Assembly: GCA_023515725.1 (NCBI GenBank)
Contig: JALDTO010000207.1
Coordinates: 83,572 to 147,571 of the forward strand
Direction: 5' to 3'
Length of the DNA: 64,000 nucleotides
Source: Amoeboaphelidium protococcarum X5
Lineage: Eukaryota > Fungi > Aphelidiomycota
In this document: one piece after another, positions 12,191 through 46,720 of the stretch
Numbering within the stretch: position 1 is the first letter of the stretch
How the letters are laid out: each line of letters opens with the position of its first letter
Position numbers and translations under genes: made by a program
Notes under the pieces: model-generated
What the model was told of the DNA's origin: nothing
Databases searched by the model: none
The model's input: the letters and a program-made list of their open reading frames with translations, nothing else

Positions 12191-15100
12191 TCATTGTTGT
12201 TTGTTGGAGGTGATGGATTTGAAGAGGCTCCTAATCTTCTGGCGCTGCAGCAATGTGGATAAGCGAGTGTTTTCTCCAGTAGGTTCACTACTAGAATTGT
12301 GGACCTCATTTACATTAACACCAACATTGCCGATCCAACCAATCTATCCCAGCATACCATCAGACTTCTTCTTTGCATTGAGTACTAATTACTGAGGTAT
12401 TCCAGCCATCAGTGCAACGTCCAGCCCATGACTAGATGCACTTGCACCATCAATCAATTTGTACAGAAACACGATATCTCTTCTCTTCAAATCACCGCCA
12501 CTTTCATCATTGCCACCATGAGTCTAGTCAGGCACTAGAGTCTACATGTGCATGCAGCGTACATTCTTGTGACCAACATAATCTTTAGTCAGCAGAGCAT
12601 AGTGAGTGCTGAATAAGCCAAGACAACGTGAAGATTCCACCAAGTAAGCAAGCACCGCAAAAGCAATAGAGTAACCATCCATAGTTCCGGTGCCTCTACC
12701 AAGCTCATCCAGAATGACAAGCGAATTTGAGGTTGCATGTTTCAGTATCCTACTTGTCTCTGCCAACTCGACCATAAATGTAGACTGTCCAGCTATGATG
12801 TTATCATTGGCGCCGATACGAGTGAACACACGGTCAAATAGAGTCATTTCACACTTGGTGGCGGGGACATAACAACCAAGCTGGGCCATAATAACAAGAA
12901 GACAAGTTTGACGAAGCATTGTACTCTTACCGCCCATGTTCGCACCCGTTAGAAGAATCATATTCTGTTTATCTCCACCCAGCTACAAGTTATTAGTGAT
13001 AAACGGCTTGTCACTAGTTGCAGCTACACATGGATGGCTCATATCTTGAACACGGATAAAAGCATCGCACTCAGTGTGGAACTCGGGACGACAGCAATTT
13101 CCCAAAATACCACCATCTATTTTGCTGACAAGAGCAAGCGAAAGATGTGCATCGAGAACTGCAACAGCTCTCACTACCGATTTGTACAAATCGTATTGTT
13201 CATCAAACAGGGCAAGAGTATCTTTATACAATTCCGCCAGTAGGAGACTCTTTCGCTCCACTAATTCATTGTAATGGTCTACCAACTTGATCAATTCCGG
13301 AGTATAAAAGCGGGAACATTGCTTGGTACCACTACGCTTGGACCACATCTCAGGAACTTTCCGCACTAGAGAACTAGGAACTTCAATTTAAAACAGTTCC
13401 TTACCGATATCTTTGAATCGCAACTCGGAAGATCCAAGCAGCTTTTGCTACTATTTCAAATACTAATTCAAAAGAGTCAACTGATCATCCACTCTTTACA
13501 CTATAGAATCAAACTGCTCATTGATGCCACCAATTAAAGAAAACTCATCCTTTTAACGCGCAGCATTGATATCAAAGCTTAAAGCCACCTATTCTAAAGA
13601 GGTTTTCAAACTACTGAGTGGCACCTGTTATACCAGAGTCTTTAAGCCAGATTACCAGCTATCAGCAGCTTCTAACAAATGACTGTTAAATAAATTATGG
13701 ATAGCACAGAATCCATCAATAACTTTCACAAAGTCCTTCAACTTTATGCTCTTTGAGTGAATTCTGGTAATCAAACGTTCGAGATCCGGGAGTTTACCCA
13801 GAACCTTCTATACAGTACCGACACAATCTAATTAAGAAAGATCGTCAATTGCATCAAGTCTGTCGTTGATCTTTCCAATATCAAACAACGGATGACACAG
13901 CCATTATTAAAACAACCGCTTACCAAAAGGAGTCGAACATTTATTCAGTAGAGAGAACAAAGAGCCGGCAGCTTACCCGTCAGTAGTAGAGAAAATCTCC
14001 AAATTCAACAAAGACTAACCATCAATGATCAGAGATTACTAGAATTGGAGAGGATCATACTAAATCACTGAGCACTGAGTTAACACTTACTAATCCAAGT
14101 TCAATGATTGCAGATAGTAAATGATCGCACCAAGGGATGATAGAACAAGTTCATTCTGAGAACAATTAACCAAAGATTAAGAGTATTCATGCCTTGCTAT
14201 TTCATCCAAGGCTTTAGGCGCATCGTAAAACTATTCGTACATGATCAATGGAGTCATTTGAACATTGTTAGGAAGAGAGGACTTGATGAGCTTCACGACT
14301 TTTGGACTAAGATTATTCTTACCGAATAGGATTTCCTTTGGTTTACACTAGGCCAACAGAGTCTCCAGTACACTCAAGTCATCCAAGTGACAGAAATGTA
14401 AGTCATTCGTACTAGCGTCCAACAGTACCAAACCATACTATCCATTCTATTCTTTAATGGCCAGGCAAAAGTTGCTAAGATCATCTTTAATCATTGAGGA
14501 GTCAACAAGTGTGCCCTGAGTAAGAACACACGTCAACTCTCTTCTAACAATGTCCTCCTTTTCTTGTACACCATCACGGTCTTTAATCTACTTCCCCAGA
14601 GACGTTTCCATCTAATCGACACGGCTCACTTTATATCCACTCTCAATAAACTTGCTGGCCCAATAATCGAAAGAATTCTGGGGCACACCAACCATTCTCA
14701 TCACACCACGTTGCGTCAACTTGAGATTAAATAATTGCGCGCCAATATCAGCATCATTTTCAAATAATTCATAGAATTTGCCCTTCTGAAAGAACAGAAT
14801 GGTATCAAAGTGCTCACTCTTTATCTTCCAGTACTAACGCTCAAATGGAGTACAATTTCTGTAAAACTTTTCCGGCACATGGATAGTAGACGCATCATAC
14901 AGTTCATCAACTGGGCGTCTCCCTTACGAATCCTTCTTATCATCCAACCACTTGTACTTCTCATCTTCCTACCGGATCTTTTTGGCGGCGGACGCGGAGA
15001 CTGCAGGGGATGAGGCAATGCAAGGAGTTGATTGAGGCTCATCATATTTACGTTTCAATGCAGGCTGTCTAGGAGTACTGAATGAAGATTACTTGCCAAT

Positions 15101-39829: not shown

Positions 39830-40521
39830 TTGGAGCTGTAATCAAAAGAGTTTTAGTTTGATGTATTGTAAGGTAATATAACTCTCAACTGTGAATGGCC
39901 TTAAAATGTAACATGTTGAAAACGCATAGTCATCAATTAGTGTGTTGCGATGCGTTTATTAATAGCACTGGAGTTCGCCAACAGCGGAGCTTGTAGCTTG
40001 TAGCTTTTGCTCAGCTCGGCTAGCTGTTTCTAATAAACGGTATCAATTGCACGTGTATATAGTGGGAAAAAAACAAAGTAAAATAACAACACCAAGCATA
40101 TAAAGAAAGAAATCATAATTTCAGCTAATTTTATGAGTGAAGCCTTTGCAAGCAGTTAAAAATACTGACCAAATAAATATACAGGGACAACAAATAATCA
40201 AATACTTTTCAAAATCAAAACGTAAAAAACATTGCAATTTGCTTGATGCACAGGCATAACATATTGGATAGGTACCTTATTTTTGTTTAGAGAGCTGCTC
40301 TGCCAATTTATCGCCCGGCGAGACTTTTGTCGTTTCTCGAGAAGAGGCGCGACGAAAGCTTGGCAGCAGGACCTTGGAAGGAGTTGAACCCATCCGCTCT
40401 TGTAATCATATTAGAGAACCATGTCTTCCAACAACAACAAAAAAAAACTTCTTGTTGACCTAACTTAACTTTAGATGATTATATAGAACCAAGTATGTAG
40501 TCAAAAAAGCAAAAAGAATTG

Positions 40522-40594
40522 GAGCGCCTAGTGGATTCGAACCAATGACCTTCGGATTATGAGACCGACGCCCTAGCCGCTGGGCGAAGGCGCT
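40522..40594 (-). tRNA. tRNA-Met (CAT), elongator-type anticodon and T arms
   Basis: Cloverleaf AGCGCCT-TC-GCCC..GGGC-G-TCGGT CTCATAA TCCGA-AGGTC-ATTGG TTCGAAT CCACT-AGGCGCT, with a B-box and a downstream T5/T6 Pol III terminator (plus-strand A runs 40503-40515). Confidence 0.9.
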
Positions 40595-40608
40595 GAGTAA
40601 ATACTGAA

Positions 40609-40845
40609 TGTTACAGTCGTGCAGACTGATCAATGATCTTTGCCTATTGTGGCTGAGCAACGTTCCCACGCCTCCTCAAGATTATACAATCAAGTTCTCA
40701 CGATAGATGAGATCCATCTCTTTTGATCATCGTGTTAATATAGTATTCAACTTATTTACACGTTTTTACCTTGCTTGTCTGGTTAGATCCTGTATAGTCA
40801 GTCTAAGTTCCCCTGTCTAGTATATCAAGTAGTCCCGATCTAACA
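40609..40845 (+). repeat. 5' LTR
   Basis: Identical by eye to 45535-45771. Confidence 0.97.
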
Positions 40846-40846
40846 C

Positions 40847-40856
40847 TTAACACGAT
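40847..40856 (+). other. Self-priming primer-binding site
   Basis: TTAACACGAT is the reverse complement of ATCGTGTTAA in the LTR (40729-40738). No TGG-type tRNA PBS is present. Confidence 0.7.
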
Positions 40857-40867
40857 CCATAAGTATC

Positions 40868-41839
40868 ATGTCTGACTTCCGTGCCACAACACCTGAAGGT
40901 GTAAATGCCGAAATGTTGCATGCGTTGCATAATGCTCAGGTTCACAACGAGTAGTTATAACAATAGATTGCTGCATATGAAAATTAGCGTTTGTCCACTC
41001 CAGCCCAAGTTCCAGTGTCAGTAGAGTAAAATTCAGTCATCTTGCCTTCCAAGTACAATGGTGAGCGTGAACTGTTCCGTGGGTTCAGAAATTAGTTAAC
41101 CATCCTGTTTAAAATCCATCCTTAAAGGTACAAGAGCGACGAGATTAAAATTATGACCGTCATATCTTTGCTGTCCGGTAATGCCTTGTAATGGGTCAAT
41201 CCAATACTAGAACATCCGAGTAAATATCCAGATACTTTGGCCAATTATGACAGGTTTATGAGCGCGTTAGCTGCTGCATTCTAGCCTATTGAGCAAATGG
41301 CAATTGCTGGGAATCGAATTAAGCTATTGAAGCAACTGAAGAAGACTGCATCTGTATACTCTACTGAATTTTTAAGTCTTGCTTCCGACTTAGATTGGAA
41401 TGATTCTGCACTAATGTTCTAGTACAAGGATGGGTTATCTTATCAGGTTAAGAAGATGTTATTAGGATACCCAGAACCAAGCAAATTGCAAGAGTTGATA
41501 GACTTATCCATCAGATGTGACTAACGTCTGTCTTTGTTTCATGCTGCAAATGGCAGAGTTGTCAATAATCAATTATTCCAGAATATCGCTAATAATCGCA
41601 TTCCGTAATTTGGTCCTGCTAATAATCATCAAGTTGTTCCAGCTGCAGTTCCAGTCAACAATCCAGATGCTATGGAGATAGATCAAATTCAACGTGGTAG
41701 ATTGTCGCCAGAAGAGAGAGCCCGTAGAATCGCCAATAATTTGTGCATCGTCTGTGGTTAGACTGGTCATTGGAGACGTGACTGCCCATTAGCTGTTCGT
41801 AACCGTCCAGCGCGCCGTGCATAAGTCAATGAGCAATGA
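40868..41839 (+). CDS. gag: Retrotransposon Gag (323 aa) with CCHC knuckle
   Basis: LPSKYNGER, LSGNALQW, LDWNDSALMFQYKDGL, AMEID, CIVCGQTGHWRRDC; ends at TGA41837. Confidence 0.93.
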
Positions 41840-44800
41840 CAGTTAGTTAATGAAGATGATAATGGTATTGAAGTAATATTGAATCTGAACTCAATTTCAT
41901 CTTGCAAAATTCAACTTAACAGTACAATCCTTATTGGCACATAATCAATCAAGGCTATACTTCTACTGGATTGTGGTGCTGATGTCTGTTTCGTCAGCCA
42001 GAAGTTGGTGGATACTTACAAGATTCCAGTGGTTCAATTGAAGTAGTCCATTACTGTCAAGTTTGCCGATGGCAACGAGGATCATTGCACCAAGATTATC
42101 CATCAAACTACACCCTTATAGTTGCATATTGGTGAACATATTGAAACGATTACCTTCCTGGTGACTTAATTGTCATAAGATATCATTCTTGGCATGTCTT
42201 GGCTGAAGCAACATAATCCGCTGATTGATTGGATCTAAGAGAAGGTAACATTTAACTCTGATTTCTGCGTTATCAACTGCGTTGTTCATGAAACTTCTGT
42301 CTATAGTAATGCTTAGTCCTCTTCTAGTGTCAGATTGGAATAAGAGTCTTTAAAATAACCTGCTCCAAAGGTCTCTTTCAATCTGAATTCTATGGTCTAA
42401 TCCAATAATATAGAGATGGCAGACAGTCATCTTGCCATCTTATCTAATGTTGATTCATCTACACAAACAGAATAATAGCTAAAAGAAATTAATTCACCTA
42501 GTTCTGCTTCTTCAGCTACTGCAGTTAAAGTTTCTACTGAGATTCAAGTGGATGTTTCAGAAATTCAGTCGTTGGTCGAAGAAGAGAAGCGTTCCATTGT
42601 TCTGGAGATTGATGATCTTTACACTCAGATGCGTGATATCTCTGAAGTTCCGAATAATACTGATCATGTTAATTAAGAGTTGCCAAAGTAAATAGCTGAT
42701 TATTAAACTGTGTTTGACAAGAAGATGGCTGATTAATTGCCGCCTCATCGCGCGTCTGATTGTACTATTGATTTAAAGCCTGGCCCTGAACCATTCTTTG
42801 GTAAAGTCTATAGTCTGACTAAAGAGGAAGATTTTGCCTTGAAGGAATGGTTGTAAAGTAATATTGATAAAGGTTTCATTCGTCCAAGTAAAAGTCCATT
42901 TGGTGCACCTTGTTTTTACGTGAAGAAGCCTGACTGGACTGGAGATAAGAAGTTACGTCTGTGTATGGACTATCGTGCATTAAATAAGAATACAATTAAG
43001 AATAAGAATCCAATGCCTTTAGTATCTGATATATTTAGAACGCTGCAAAAAGCTAAGATGTTTACTACTTTGGATTTGGTTGGTGCATACAATTTATTGA
43101 GAATAAAGGAAGGCCATGAATTTAAGAGTGCATTTCGAACTAAGTATGGTTCATATGAGTTTTTGGTTATGCCTTTTGGACTTGCAAATGCTCCTGCTCA
43201 GTTTCAGACTTTTATGAATGAACTGTTGAAAGACTAGATTGGAAATTTTGTCATTGTGTTCATTGATGACATTATTATCTATTCAGACAATGAAGATGAG
43301 CACTGGTAACACGTCCGTGAAGTTTTGGAGATCTTAAGATAGAATAATCTTTACTGTAATATTGCCAAGTGTCACTTTGCATAGCGAGAATGTAAGTATT
43401 TGGGTTATGTTCTTTCAAAGGATGGGTTGTCAATGGACTTGCGTAAAGTTGAAGCTGTTTTGAAGTGGCCAAATCCAAAGAACGTGAATGAAGTGTAAAT
43501 GCTGCTTGGTTTTCTTAACTTTTACAGAAGACTTATTAAGAACTTTGCTAAATTGACCATGCCATTCACTCTGCTGCTGAAAAAAGATGTTCAATTCTGT
43601 TGGGGAGAAGAGTAGAAGGCTGCATTAGAGTAGATGAAGAAAGTTTTTGCTGATCCTCAATTTCTCATGCATCCGAATGAAGAGAAGCCATTTATTGTTG
43701 AAACTGACTCGTCTGATTTTGCCATCGCTGGTGTTTTGTCTTAATATGATGAAAATGGTGAATTGCGTCCTGTTGCGTTCTATTCTCGTCAAATGATTCC
43801 TGCTGAGCGTAATTATGAGATTTACGATAAAGAATTGCTAGCTATTCATGAATGCTTTAAAGAATGGAGACACTTTTTGTAAGGTGCTGATCATCAAGTC
43901 ACTGTTTTGTCTGATCACAAGAATCTGCAATACTTTATGGAAACAAAGTAGTTAACGCGTCGTCAAGCTCGTTGGGCTACATTCTTTGCAGAGTTCGACT
44001 TCGTTCTTACATATCGTCCTGGAAATAGAAATGGCAAAGCTGATATACTATCTAGAAGGCCCGACTATTACGTTGAAAATGATAAGGCTAATTTCTTGCG
44101 CATTATTGATCCTAATCAAGTAGTTAACGCGTTATCATTGGCTGTTTTTGGTTCAGTTGATCAAACGGTGACTATTTAAGAAATTGAGACTGTGAATTAA
44201 CTAGATTGGCCTCTTTATGTAAAGAAATGGCTAGTTTCTGGCGAATGGAAAGCAGATTTGCCTGTTGAAGTTTTGTAGTTATGCAAAGATCAAACTAAAC
44301 ATTTCTCTCTTGATGATTCTGGTAATCTCTGCAGAATTGCTGATGATGGAATAACTAAAAGTTGGTATTTACATCCTTCTTCTCGTCTGGAACAATTGGA
44401 AAGACTGCATGATAAGCTTGGTCATTTGAAGAACGACTCAATTGCTGAATTGATTAAGAGAAGATACTGGTGGCCAAAGATGGATCAAGAGATTAAAGAT
44501 TACATTTCTCGTTGTGCATATTGTTAACTTGATAAGTCCTAATCTACTTCTGTGTCATCCACTCCTATTAAACCAGTTCCACCTGTTGCTTTGCCCTTTG
44601 AAAGATGGGGAATTGATTTGGTATAAGATCTGAGTGAGACTAAGTCTGGTAATAAGCACATTATTACTGCAATTGATTATGCTACACGTTGGGTCATTGC
44701 TAAAGCTGTTCCAAATAGAGATGCTAAGACTGTGGCTAATTTTATTTATCATGAGATTGTAATGAATTTTGGCGCTCCTTTTGAAATTATCAGTGATCGT

Positions 44801-45562
44801 GGTAGTTCTTTCTTGGATGAAGGTGTTAAATACTATGAGAAGAAGTGGAACATTAAGCATCTAGCTACTTCTCCTTATCATCCTTAGACCAATGGAATGA
44901 TTGAACGTATGCATGCTATGTTGCGTCATGCTATTGCTACTCTAGCTGCTGGTAATCCTTCTCGTTGGGATGAATATTTGGCAGAAGCTGTATTTGGTAT
45001 TCGCGTCAGAACTCATGCAGTTACTAAGTCATCTCCATTTTATCTCATGTTTGGAGTAAATCCAAGAATTCCTGGTGATACTCACCCACCATTGTCATCT
45101 ATGAAGCCACTGGATGAATTGGAAGAGATTGAAGTAGAAGGTGCAATTATGGCTAGAACCTTCGAAGAAATGGGTAATGCTAGACGCGCTGCTTATGAAC
45201 GCTCGTTGACTCAAGCTGAATTGATGCGTAAAAGATATAATTTGGATCATAATGCTCCTGAGTATTTCTTCAAGGTTGGTGATTGGGTGAAGTTGAAGCA
45301 TTATGGCAAGAGTAAATTTGAGTTCAATTGGAAAGGCCCTTACAGTGTGGTAGATGTTGGGTTTCCTGGTACGTATTGGCTAATGACTCCGGCTGGCTTG
45401 CGTCTTGACTCTGTTGTTAATGAATCTGATTTGGCTCCTTGGCTTTAACCAACTGTTAATAATGAATCCTTCTTCTATGATGGTACTACAAGAAGAACTA
45501 ATGCTTTACGTCAAGGTTTTGGAGAGGGAGATAGTGTTACAGTCGTGCAGACTGATCAATGA
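41840..45562 (+). CDS. pol: Retrotransposon Pol (protease-RT-RNaseH-integrase), same frame as gag; stop codon lies in the 3' LTR
   Basis: [74 protein letters not shown]. No chromodomain. Confidence 0.95.
45521..45534 (+). other. Polypurine tract
   Basis: GGAGAGGGAGATAG immediately before the 3' LTR. Confidence 0.85.
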
Positions 45563-45771
45563 TCTTTGCCTATTGTGGCTGAGCAACGTTCCCACGCCTC
45601 CTCAAGATTATACAATCAAGTTCTCACGATAGATGAGATCCATCTCTTTTGATCATCGTGTTAATATAGTATTCAACTTATTTACACGTTTTTACCTTGC
45701 TTGTCTGGTTAGATCCTGTATAGTCAGTCTAAGTTCCCCTGTCTAGTATATCAAGTAGTCCCGATCTAACA
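45535..45771 (+). repeat. 3' LTR
   Basis: Identical by eye to the 5' LTR. Confidence 0.97.
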
Positions 45772-46720
45772 TGAAAACTGCTCACTATGCTAAATATATA
45801 GCAATTGAACAAAACGCTTGGTAATTTGACACTCTAAAAATGATATCTATTCTCTGCAATAGCATGTCGAGTAGGCTTGTATCATTTGAATTGAAAAAGT
45901 CTTACTTTAATTACGATCTGATCGATGAGAAACCATTTCAGTTCAGTAATATTTTTGTGTTACGAATTCCTTTTTGGTGGCGTGTAGTCAATCTTCCGCG
46001 ATTGTTGATCTATAGAAAGTTCACAATGGCTTTGACACAGTCCACGCAGTTCTCTTAGATGTCTAAATTAATTTTATAAGACTAGACACTTAATAAATGC
46101 CGGTGATCAACAATCGAAATAGCTTGCTAGCTGTATCAACGCAGAACTCTCCATGAGCCTTGAAGGCGGACCCATCGCGTCATGCGAACAGACTTGCAAC
46201 TACTGTGTTAGTCCAGTTTGATGGGCAGATGTGCTGGTGGTTAAATGGCTTATTGCAAAGAACACCATCTTTGTATAGGCAAAATGACTGTCCTTTTGTA
46301 AACTATTCTTCAGTTCAGATATAGTCTGTATCAGGCCCAGTTAACACCACTCTTCCTACTGCTCAGTTAGATTCTGTTGATCCGCCGTAGAAGAAGGCCA
46401 AGGTGGAAGAGGAGTTGGATCGCTTGTCTCAACCAGTTGTAAGTTGAAGAGGTACTCGTTACTGAAAGTTTCGCGAGAGAGTAGAAGCATTGATGGGCGA
46501 AGATAGAACTGTTAAGCAATTGATGTGGATTGGACAAGGGTGATCATCAACACACTCATTAACGGGGATAGTCAATGGTTGCTCCTGTTGGGTATGGCGA
46601 AAGTCAAATATATATCTAAAGATGGAGACAATAATCACGGCTTGTTGCTTGAAAATTCTATTTAAAAGCTGCAGTTAAGTACGTAATATTATTTGCCACA
46701 ATTACTAGAATATAATCAAT

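Follow-up and report, generated by a model that had tools for sequence, protein, structure and literature searches.

In-frame UGA-C at the gag-pol junction of Ty3/gypsy retrotransposons in Amoeboaphelidium protococcarum, a predicted stop codon readthrough site in a one-stop-codon genome

Ty3/gypsy retrotransposons in the genome of the algal parasite Amoeboaphelidium protococcarum X5 carry a single in-frame UGA between gag and pol, and every copy covering the junction keeps this stop and the C that follows it. The element from which this study started is at positions 40609-45771 of the window, the whole 64,000-nucleotide stretch of DNA that was analyzed (contig JALDTO010000207.1 of assembly GCA_023515725.1, positions 83,572 to 147,571, forward strand). 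Its gag reading frame ends at TGA 41837-41839, and pol continues in the same frame. We consider it likely, with a probability of roughly 0.7, that the Gag-Pol protein is made by ribosomal readthrough of this UGA, at a level set by a short 3' context.

The gag-pol junction

The frame that runs from ATG 40868 to TGA 45560 has exactly one internal TGA (41837-41839), and it has 61 in-frame TAA or TAG codons (38 + 23). The gag open reading frame (ORF) has 323 codons plus TGA (40868..41839). The pol ORF has 1240 codons plus TGA-T (41840..45562), and it follows in the same frame with zero overlap. The local sequence is GAG CAA TGA CAG TTA. The initial annotation had reported the single TGA, the same-frame pol and the CAA TGA CAG TTA context, and every detail of this observation holds on re-reading; its length of 1565 codons is right when both stops are included. 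The chance of 1240 codons without TGA is ~3e-9, and therefore pol is a real ORF. The predicted recoding site (41837..41845) consists of the TGA at 41837-41839, the C at 41840 (+4, counting from the first letter of the stop), and the hexamer CAGTTA at 41840-41845, of which this C is the first letter. A CCHC knuckle (C-X2-C-X4-H-X4-C), read directly at 41744-41785, is in gag 17 codons before the TGA.

Conservation across copies and families

Related elements were sought in the 23.6-Mb assembly that contains the window, and overlapping loci were merged. The families found (A, B/C, D, and E) form three deep lineages (A, B/C, and D/E). A second full copy of family A (A2, contig C146) is 99.6% identical to the window copy (A1) and retains TGA CAG TTA. 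The related families have only 68-72% nucleotide identity in pol. Their junctions read CAA TGA CAG TTA in family A, GAA TGA CGT TTG in families B and C, GGA TGA CTA ACT in family D, and GGG TGA CTC TCG in family E. The in-frame TGA-C is kept in all of the approximately ten copies covering the junction (A1, A2, B1, B2, C, D1, D2, E1, E2, and E3). A sense codon in other intact copies was named by the initial annotation as the observation that would speak against its reading; none of these copies has one at the TGA position.

Pol identity between the three lineages is 56-65%, and synonymous sites are saturated. The paired long terminal repeats (LTRs) are identical within copies A1, A2, B1, and E1, and these copies are young. 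The ratio of non-synonymous to synonymous change (omega) in pol is 0.13-0.17 between lineages. In the 45 codons directly 3' of the TGA, non-synonymous changes per site are far below synonymous changes, and each of the several insertions and deletions near the junction has a length divisible by three. The codon before the stop varies (CAA, GAA, GGA, or GGG), and the codon after it (CAG, CGT, CTA, or CTC) encodes Q, R, or L. Because these flanking codons differ while the C stays, the +4 position is constrained as a nucleotide and not as part of an amino acid. The stop and its C have persisted through many rounds of retrotransposition during which the surrounding sequence changed. By comparison of the families, selection has conserved the in-frame UGA-C in a clade of young elements, and the stop is not a mutation.

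A contig from a sediment metagenome (run X5) spans 41700-41997 with 2 differences from the window; among those listed, none is at the TGA, and this contig does not establish an unchanged TGA. Two copies have irregularities. Copy B1 has identical 266-bp LTRs, yet its gag is split over two frames by an apparent frame break (L009/L030, contig C207, merged, ~1930-1987). In the C-family copy, pol is interrupted by an assembly gap (Ns).

Genetic code of the host

Translation of UAR codons (UAA and UAG) as glutamine has been published for A. protococcarum (PMC5304391). The elements themselves agree with this code. When Pol was aligned across the three lineages, TAA or TAG positions were matched by TAA, TAG, CAA, or CAG elsewhere in 82 of 202 comparisons. 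This supports the proposal of the initial annotation that UAA and UAG are sense codons in the host; most likely they encode glutamine. A tRNA with anticodon CUA (L013, 518-591, minus strand), labeled "Pyl" by ARAGORN, is a candidate tRNA-Gln(CUA) for the reassigned UAG. At window position 44456, a substitution between A1 and A2 turns AAG (Lys) into TAG; the copy with the TAG is otherwise intact, its LTRs are identical, and the codon is tolerated as sense. Families resembling long interspersed nuclear elements, which are non-LTR elements (L037, L044, L045, L047, L048, and L052), have ORFs of more than 1200 codons that are rich in TAA and TAG sense codons.

Stop context in elements and host genes

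UGA-C is the leakiest tetranucleotide in other eukaryotes (references collected in PMC10085805). At the stops of host ORFs of at least 150 codons in the window (n=40; raw ORFs with TGA as the only stop), the +4 nucleotide is A in 16, T in 18, G in 6, and C in 0. None of the 28 host ORFs of at least 250 codons ends in TGA-C, although a C comes next at 17% of the TGA trinucleotides across the window as a whole. Comparison of the three element lineages with these 28 host ORFs was significant by Fisher test (p = 2e-4). The pol stops of the elements are TGA-T or TGA-G, never TGA-C. In this genome, host stops avoid UGA-C, and the elements have it fixed at the end of gag. Tandem or closely spaced TGAs are present at the ORF ends at 12191, 31298, and 33700 of the window (TGATGATGA, TGATTGATTGA), and at host ORF ends such neighboring TGAs may provide back-up termination where a genome has only one stop codon.

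The initial annotation had described the junction as a textbook stop-CARYYA signal of the tobacco mosaic virus (TMV) type. This description is accurate for lineage A, and it does not extend to families B, C, D, and E, where the stop is followed by CGT TTG, CTA ACT, or CTC TCG. The CGU, CUA, and CUC contexts of the sister lineages resemble type II, Sindbis, and Tj1 contexts. The operative signal could still be the TMV-type hexamer and not UGA-C alone. Both lineage-A copies read CAA TGA CAG TTA, in which the codon preceding the stop is also that of TMV. The sister lineages, however, maintain the same architecture with other hexamers, so the hexamer is unneeded for keeping the strategy, and once the +4 C is given, a match to CARYYA is expected by chance in ~1/128 per lineage. 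We regard the hexamer as an unlikely operative signal. The candidate signal common to all lineages is UGA-C; CARYYA may add to its effect in lineage A and would not define the strategy.

Mechanism of Gag-Pol expression

Under the readthrough model, most ribosomes would end at the UGA and produce Gag. A minority would decode the UGA via a near-cognate tRNA and continue through protease, reverse transcriptase (RT), RNase H, and integrase, so that the Gag-Pol fusion would be made in a low and fixed proportion. We predict a short, local stimulatory signal, with UGA followed by C in every lineage, plus the CARYYA-type hexamer in lineage A. Both readthrough as the means of bypass and its efficiency are what we infer from sequence comparison.

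Several observations weigh against this model. The gag-pol junction of the Candida albicans element Tca2 (Ty1/copia) also has an in-frame UGA, and it gave no readthrough in Saccharomyces cerevisiae reporters (PMC2194720); because of this failure, an in-frame stop does not prove canonical readthrough. Tca2 and the aphelid elements share the gag-UGA-pol arrangement, and Tca2 differs in having a predicted pseudoknot and in belonging to another superfamily. A stimulatory structure was not found downstream of the aphelid stops. Single-sequence folds of the 124 nt after the stop gave z-scores of +1.09, -1.64, and +0.38; shuffled sequence folds at least as well in A and E and only marginally worse in B, and a consensus fold of five junctions had 0 pairs. 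In families D and E, an ATG occurs in frame 16-17 codons past the TGA. Among public sequencing runs that contain the element, none is on record as RNA, and the contigs obtained from runs X1, X5, X6, and X7 are all DNA. Finally, the sample of host stops is small and consists of window ORFs, not gene models.

Some of these observations would also be expected if the UGA ended Gag in all cases and Pol were produced by another route, such as an internal promoter or internal initiation, termination-reinitiation, stop-hopping, or a spliced mRNA. The Tca2 junction, which lacked readthrough activity, carried a minor promoter (PMC2194720), the ATG in families D and E could serve such a route, and a downstream stimulator was not detected in the folds. 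In families A and B/C, however, the stretch from the TGA to the protease active site has no ATG, so that the first ATG in the pol frame comes only past that site. The frame relation of gag and pol has survived insertions, deletions, and saturated divergence, and purifying selection acts on the codons that immediately follow the TGA. The invariant +4 C would have no role in such routes. Another bypass or separate expression of Pol is the main rival to readthrough, and it is improbable in our view.

Efficient decoding of the UGA as selenocysteine, or as Trp or Cys by a dedicated tRNA, would make Gag-Pol the main product, from which Gag would be released by proteolysis. A 1:1 strategy is viable in principle, as single-ORF gypsy elements occur in the same genome (contig C290) and among the relatives described below. 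A selenocysteine tRNA was not found in the genome, however, and UGA terminates all long host ORFs in the window. The single UGA among 1564 codons also contrasts with 61 TAA and TAG codons; an ordinary sense UGA would be less rare and less fixed in position. Efficient decoding is thus very improbable. A random origin of the TGA, by nonsense mutation in dead copies, has almost no probability and was rejected. The frame break in B1 gag indicates that some copies are damaged, but the same junction stop recurs in approximately ten copies that belong to four families in three deep lineages. Synonymous sites between these lineages are saturated, LTRs are identical, and omega is ~0.15, so the family comparison rules out the accident that the initial annotation had considered less likely.

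Origin of the in-frame stop

Relatives of the aphelid elements were identified by a profile-free search of 1.84 billion proteins with a 186-residue piece of integrase. The search returned full-length Pol proteins with up to 69% identity from metagenomes and one NCBI assembly, none of them informatively named. Relatives P0002-P0006, P0022, and P0024 (L059-L064, L067, and L068) have 46-69% identity to the integrase query, with 60-69% for the closest. These environmental relatives are similar to the aphelid elements in domain order and size, and the tail of gag and the head of pol are homologous. Unlike the aphelid elements, they use standard stop codons.

The relatives also differ at the junction. 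Among nine relatives whose contigs were examined, pol is in the -1 frame in seven, and gag and pol form a single fused ORF in two (P0007 and P0017; L065 and L066). In six of the seven, a canonical slippery heptamer (GGGAAAC, AAAAAAC, or TTTAAAT), in register with gag, comes shortly ahead of the gag stop. The four aphelid families group together as a single clade in the Pol tree, with an SH-aLRT (Shimodaira-Hasegawa-like approximate likelihood ratio test) support of 99. The sister of this clade is an element with -1 frameshifting (SH-aLRT 96), and the clade lies within a set of other frameshifting and single-ORF elements; because of this position the in-frame TGA is derived in the aphelid clade. 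The tree thus places one switch from -1 frameshifting to an in-frame stop at the base of the aphelid clade, with the stop retained afterward.

The genome also contains a more distantly related gypsy lineage (L049, contig C290:312-2818, frame 0), which encodes gag (CCHC) and pol (DSGA protease and RT) in one ORF with 25 TAA or TAG codons and no TGA. Because this lineage fuses gag and pol without a stop, the host does not impose the stop strategy. A degenerate relative of the C290 lineage is present at C162:105364-108777.

Comparison with known systems

In-frame stops have precedents among gypsy elements, for which the initial annotation had named frameshifting or a single ORF as the usual arrangement. 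Tj1 of Schizosaccharomyces japonicus is a self-primed element of ~5 kb with 244-bp LTRs, and its in-frame TGA is required for transposition (PMC4600332). Tj1, Tosmo1-3, and Tcry1, Ty3/gypsy elements of the Tf1/sushi group, share an in-frame TGA in a conserved GAA TGA CT context (PMC10085805). The aphelid elements resemble the Tj1 group in size (~5 kb), LTR length (~240 bp), a single gag-pol frame, and a single TGA-C, as well as in insertion just upstream of tRNA genes and a primer-binding site (PBS) of the self-priming type. Where the Tj1 group has GAA TGA CT, the aphelid elements have GAA TGA CG, GGA TGA CT, or GGG TGA CT. Unlike Tj1, they have a CCHC knuckle, no chromodomain, and 61 TAA or TAG sense codons. 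Convergence with Tj1 is likelier than common descent because the nearest relatives of the aphelid elements use frameshifting. The in-frame stop probably arose independently of Tj1, as judged from a Pol tree in which the aphelid families are compared with environmental relatives only.

The gammaretrovirus murine leukemia virus (MLV) has a UAG between gag and pol, with an essential pseudoknot 8 nt downstream. MLV and the aphelid elements are alike in having a single in-frame gag-pol stop and low-level production of a Gag-Pol fusion, which in the aphelid is predicted. They differ in that MLV combines UAG with a pseudoknot, whereas the aphelid elements combine UGA with no detectable downstream structure. 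Among short-context signals, lineage A fits the TMV type I signal (stop-CARYYA), and lineages B-E fit the UGA-C(G/U) class represented by type II, Sindbis, and mammalian UGA-C, UGA-CGG, and UGA-CUA(G) sites. Such signals rely on the nucleotides just 3' of the stop; in the aphelid, the release factor must recognize UGA only, and the activity of these contexts there is predicted.

In-frame UGA readthrough at a gag-pol junction is established biology, and the mechanism proposed here is not new. What is new is the variant-code host, the switch from frameshifting, and the avoidance of UGA-C at host stops. No paper on both Amoeboaphelidium and retrotransposons turned up in the collection of papers that was searched, and aphelid recoding sites may therefore be undescribed. 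As a broader scenario, which we offer tentatively and with somewhat less than even confidence, the aphelid clade may have dropped an ancestral -1 frameshifting signal, come to set its Gag to Gag-Pol ratio by readthrough of the sole stop codon, and converged on the GAA/GGR-UGA-C(U/G) context of Tj1, while host genes were purged of UGA-C. If this is true, UGA-C would be intrinsically leaky in one-stop-codon translation, and the elements would exploit a weakness tied to the code change. The invariant TGA-C in the elements, together with its count of 0/40 at host stops, offers a simple way to study termination fidelity and the effects of context where the code has a single stop codon. The four natural junction contexts, which differ in predicted strength, are ready-made readthrough reporters for such systems.

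Element architecture

The window element is intact and compact (5163 bp), and all of its features described here are on the forward strand. The 5' LTR (40609..40845) and the 3' LTR (45535..45771) are 237-bp direct repeats with TG...CA ends; they are 100% identical over 237 bp, and the initial annotation had also called them identical. The pol stop at 45560 is inside the 3' LTR. Reading of the flanks identified a 4-bp target-site duplication, TGAA (left copy 40605..40608, right copy 45772-45775). A PBS-like 10-mer at 40847..40856 is complementary to LTR positions 40729-40738, with ~0.005 matches expected by chance. It is a candidate for Tf1-type self-primer pairing rather than pairing with a tRNA primer, for a transcript whose start is not known. 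A polypurine tract (45521..45534) is directly upstream of the 3' LTR.

Protein domains were identified by Pfam search of pieces that are stop-free under the standard code, and gag and pol were translated separately with table 6. Gag has a weak match to Retrotrans_gag (capsid-like). In pol, Pfam identified protease (41945-42043), RT (42857-43234, also found by RVT_1 genome scan), RNase H (43745-43879), integrase zinc finger (44279-44524), and integrase core (44627-44884). A match resembling MLVIN_C within 44888-45445 corresponds to a GPY/F or SH3-like C-terminal domain. No chromodomain was found in the Pfam scan of 44888-45445, and the unscanned last 37 codons (45449-45559) are too short for one. 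LTRs with TG...CA ends, a target-site duplication, and the order gag (CCHC), protease, RT, RNase H, and integrase place the element in Ty3/gypsy. It is a young, probably active LTR retrotransposon of the aphelid.

Integration sites and environmental occurrence

A host tRNA-Met(CAT) gene, identified by ARAGORN at 40521..40594 on the minus strand, has its 5' end 14 nt from the 5' LTR. The second A copy is 35 nt from a tRNA-Gly gene (L006, 1395-1465), and an A-type solo LTR is 21 nt from a tRNA-Glu gene (L012, 1408-1479). Whichever way the element is oriented, the A-type LTR end in these three cases is upstream of the tRNA gene. This placement is similar to the targeting of RNA polymerase III (Pol III) genes by Ty3 and Tj1, and the tRNA-Met gene is a probable Pol III target of integration. 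For a further A-type solo LTR (C146:915169-915406), no tRNA gene was found within the flank covered. These two A-type solo LTRs (~99% identical) are next to other families: one (L011, 1501-1738; merged C146:913669-922109) is separated by 5 nt from an E-family 5' LTR, and the other (L012, 1501-1736) adjoins the C-family element. Stacked insertions at the same spots suggest integration hot spots common to the families.

A different sample carries the same species label; in its runs, the element was absent and only diverged RT pieces were found. The sediment metagenome run X5 contains ~59% of the words of the element at an identity of at least 99%, in contigs on window positions 41341-45739; therefore the host, or at least the element, occurs in nature outside the sequenced culture.

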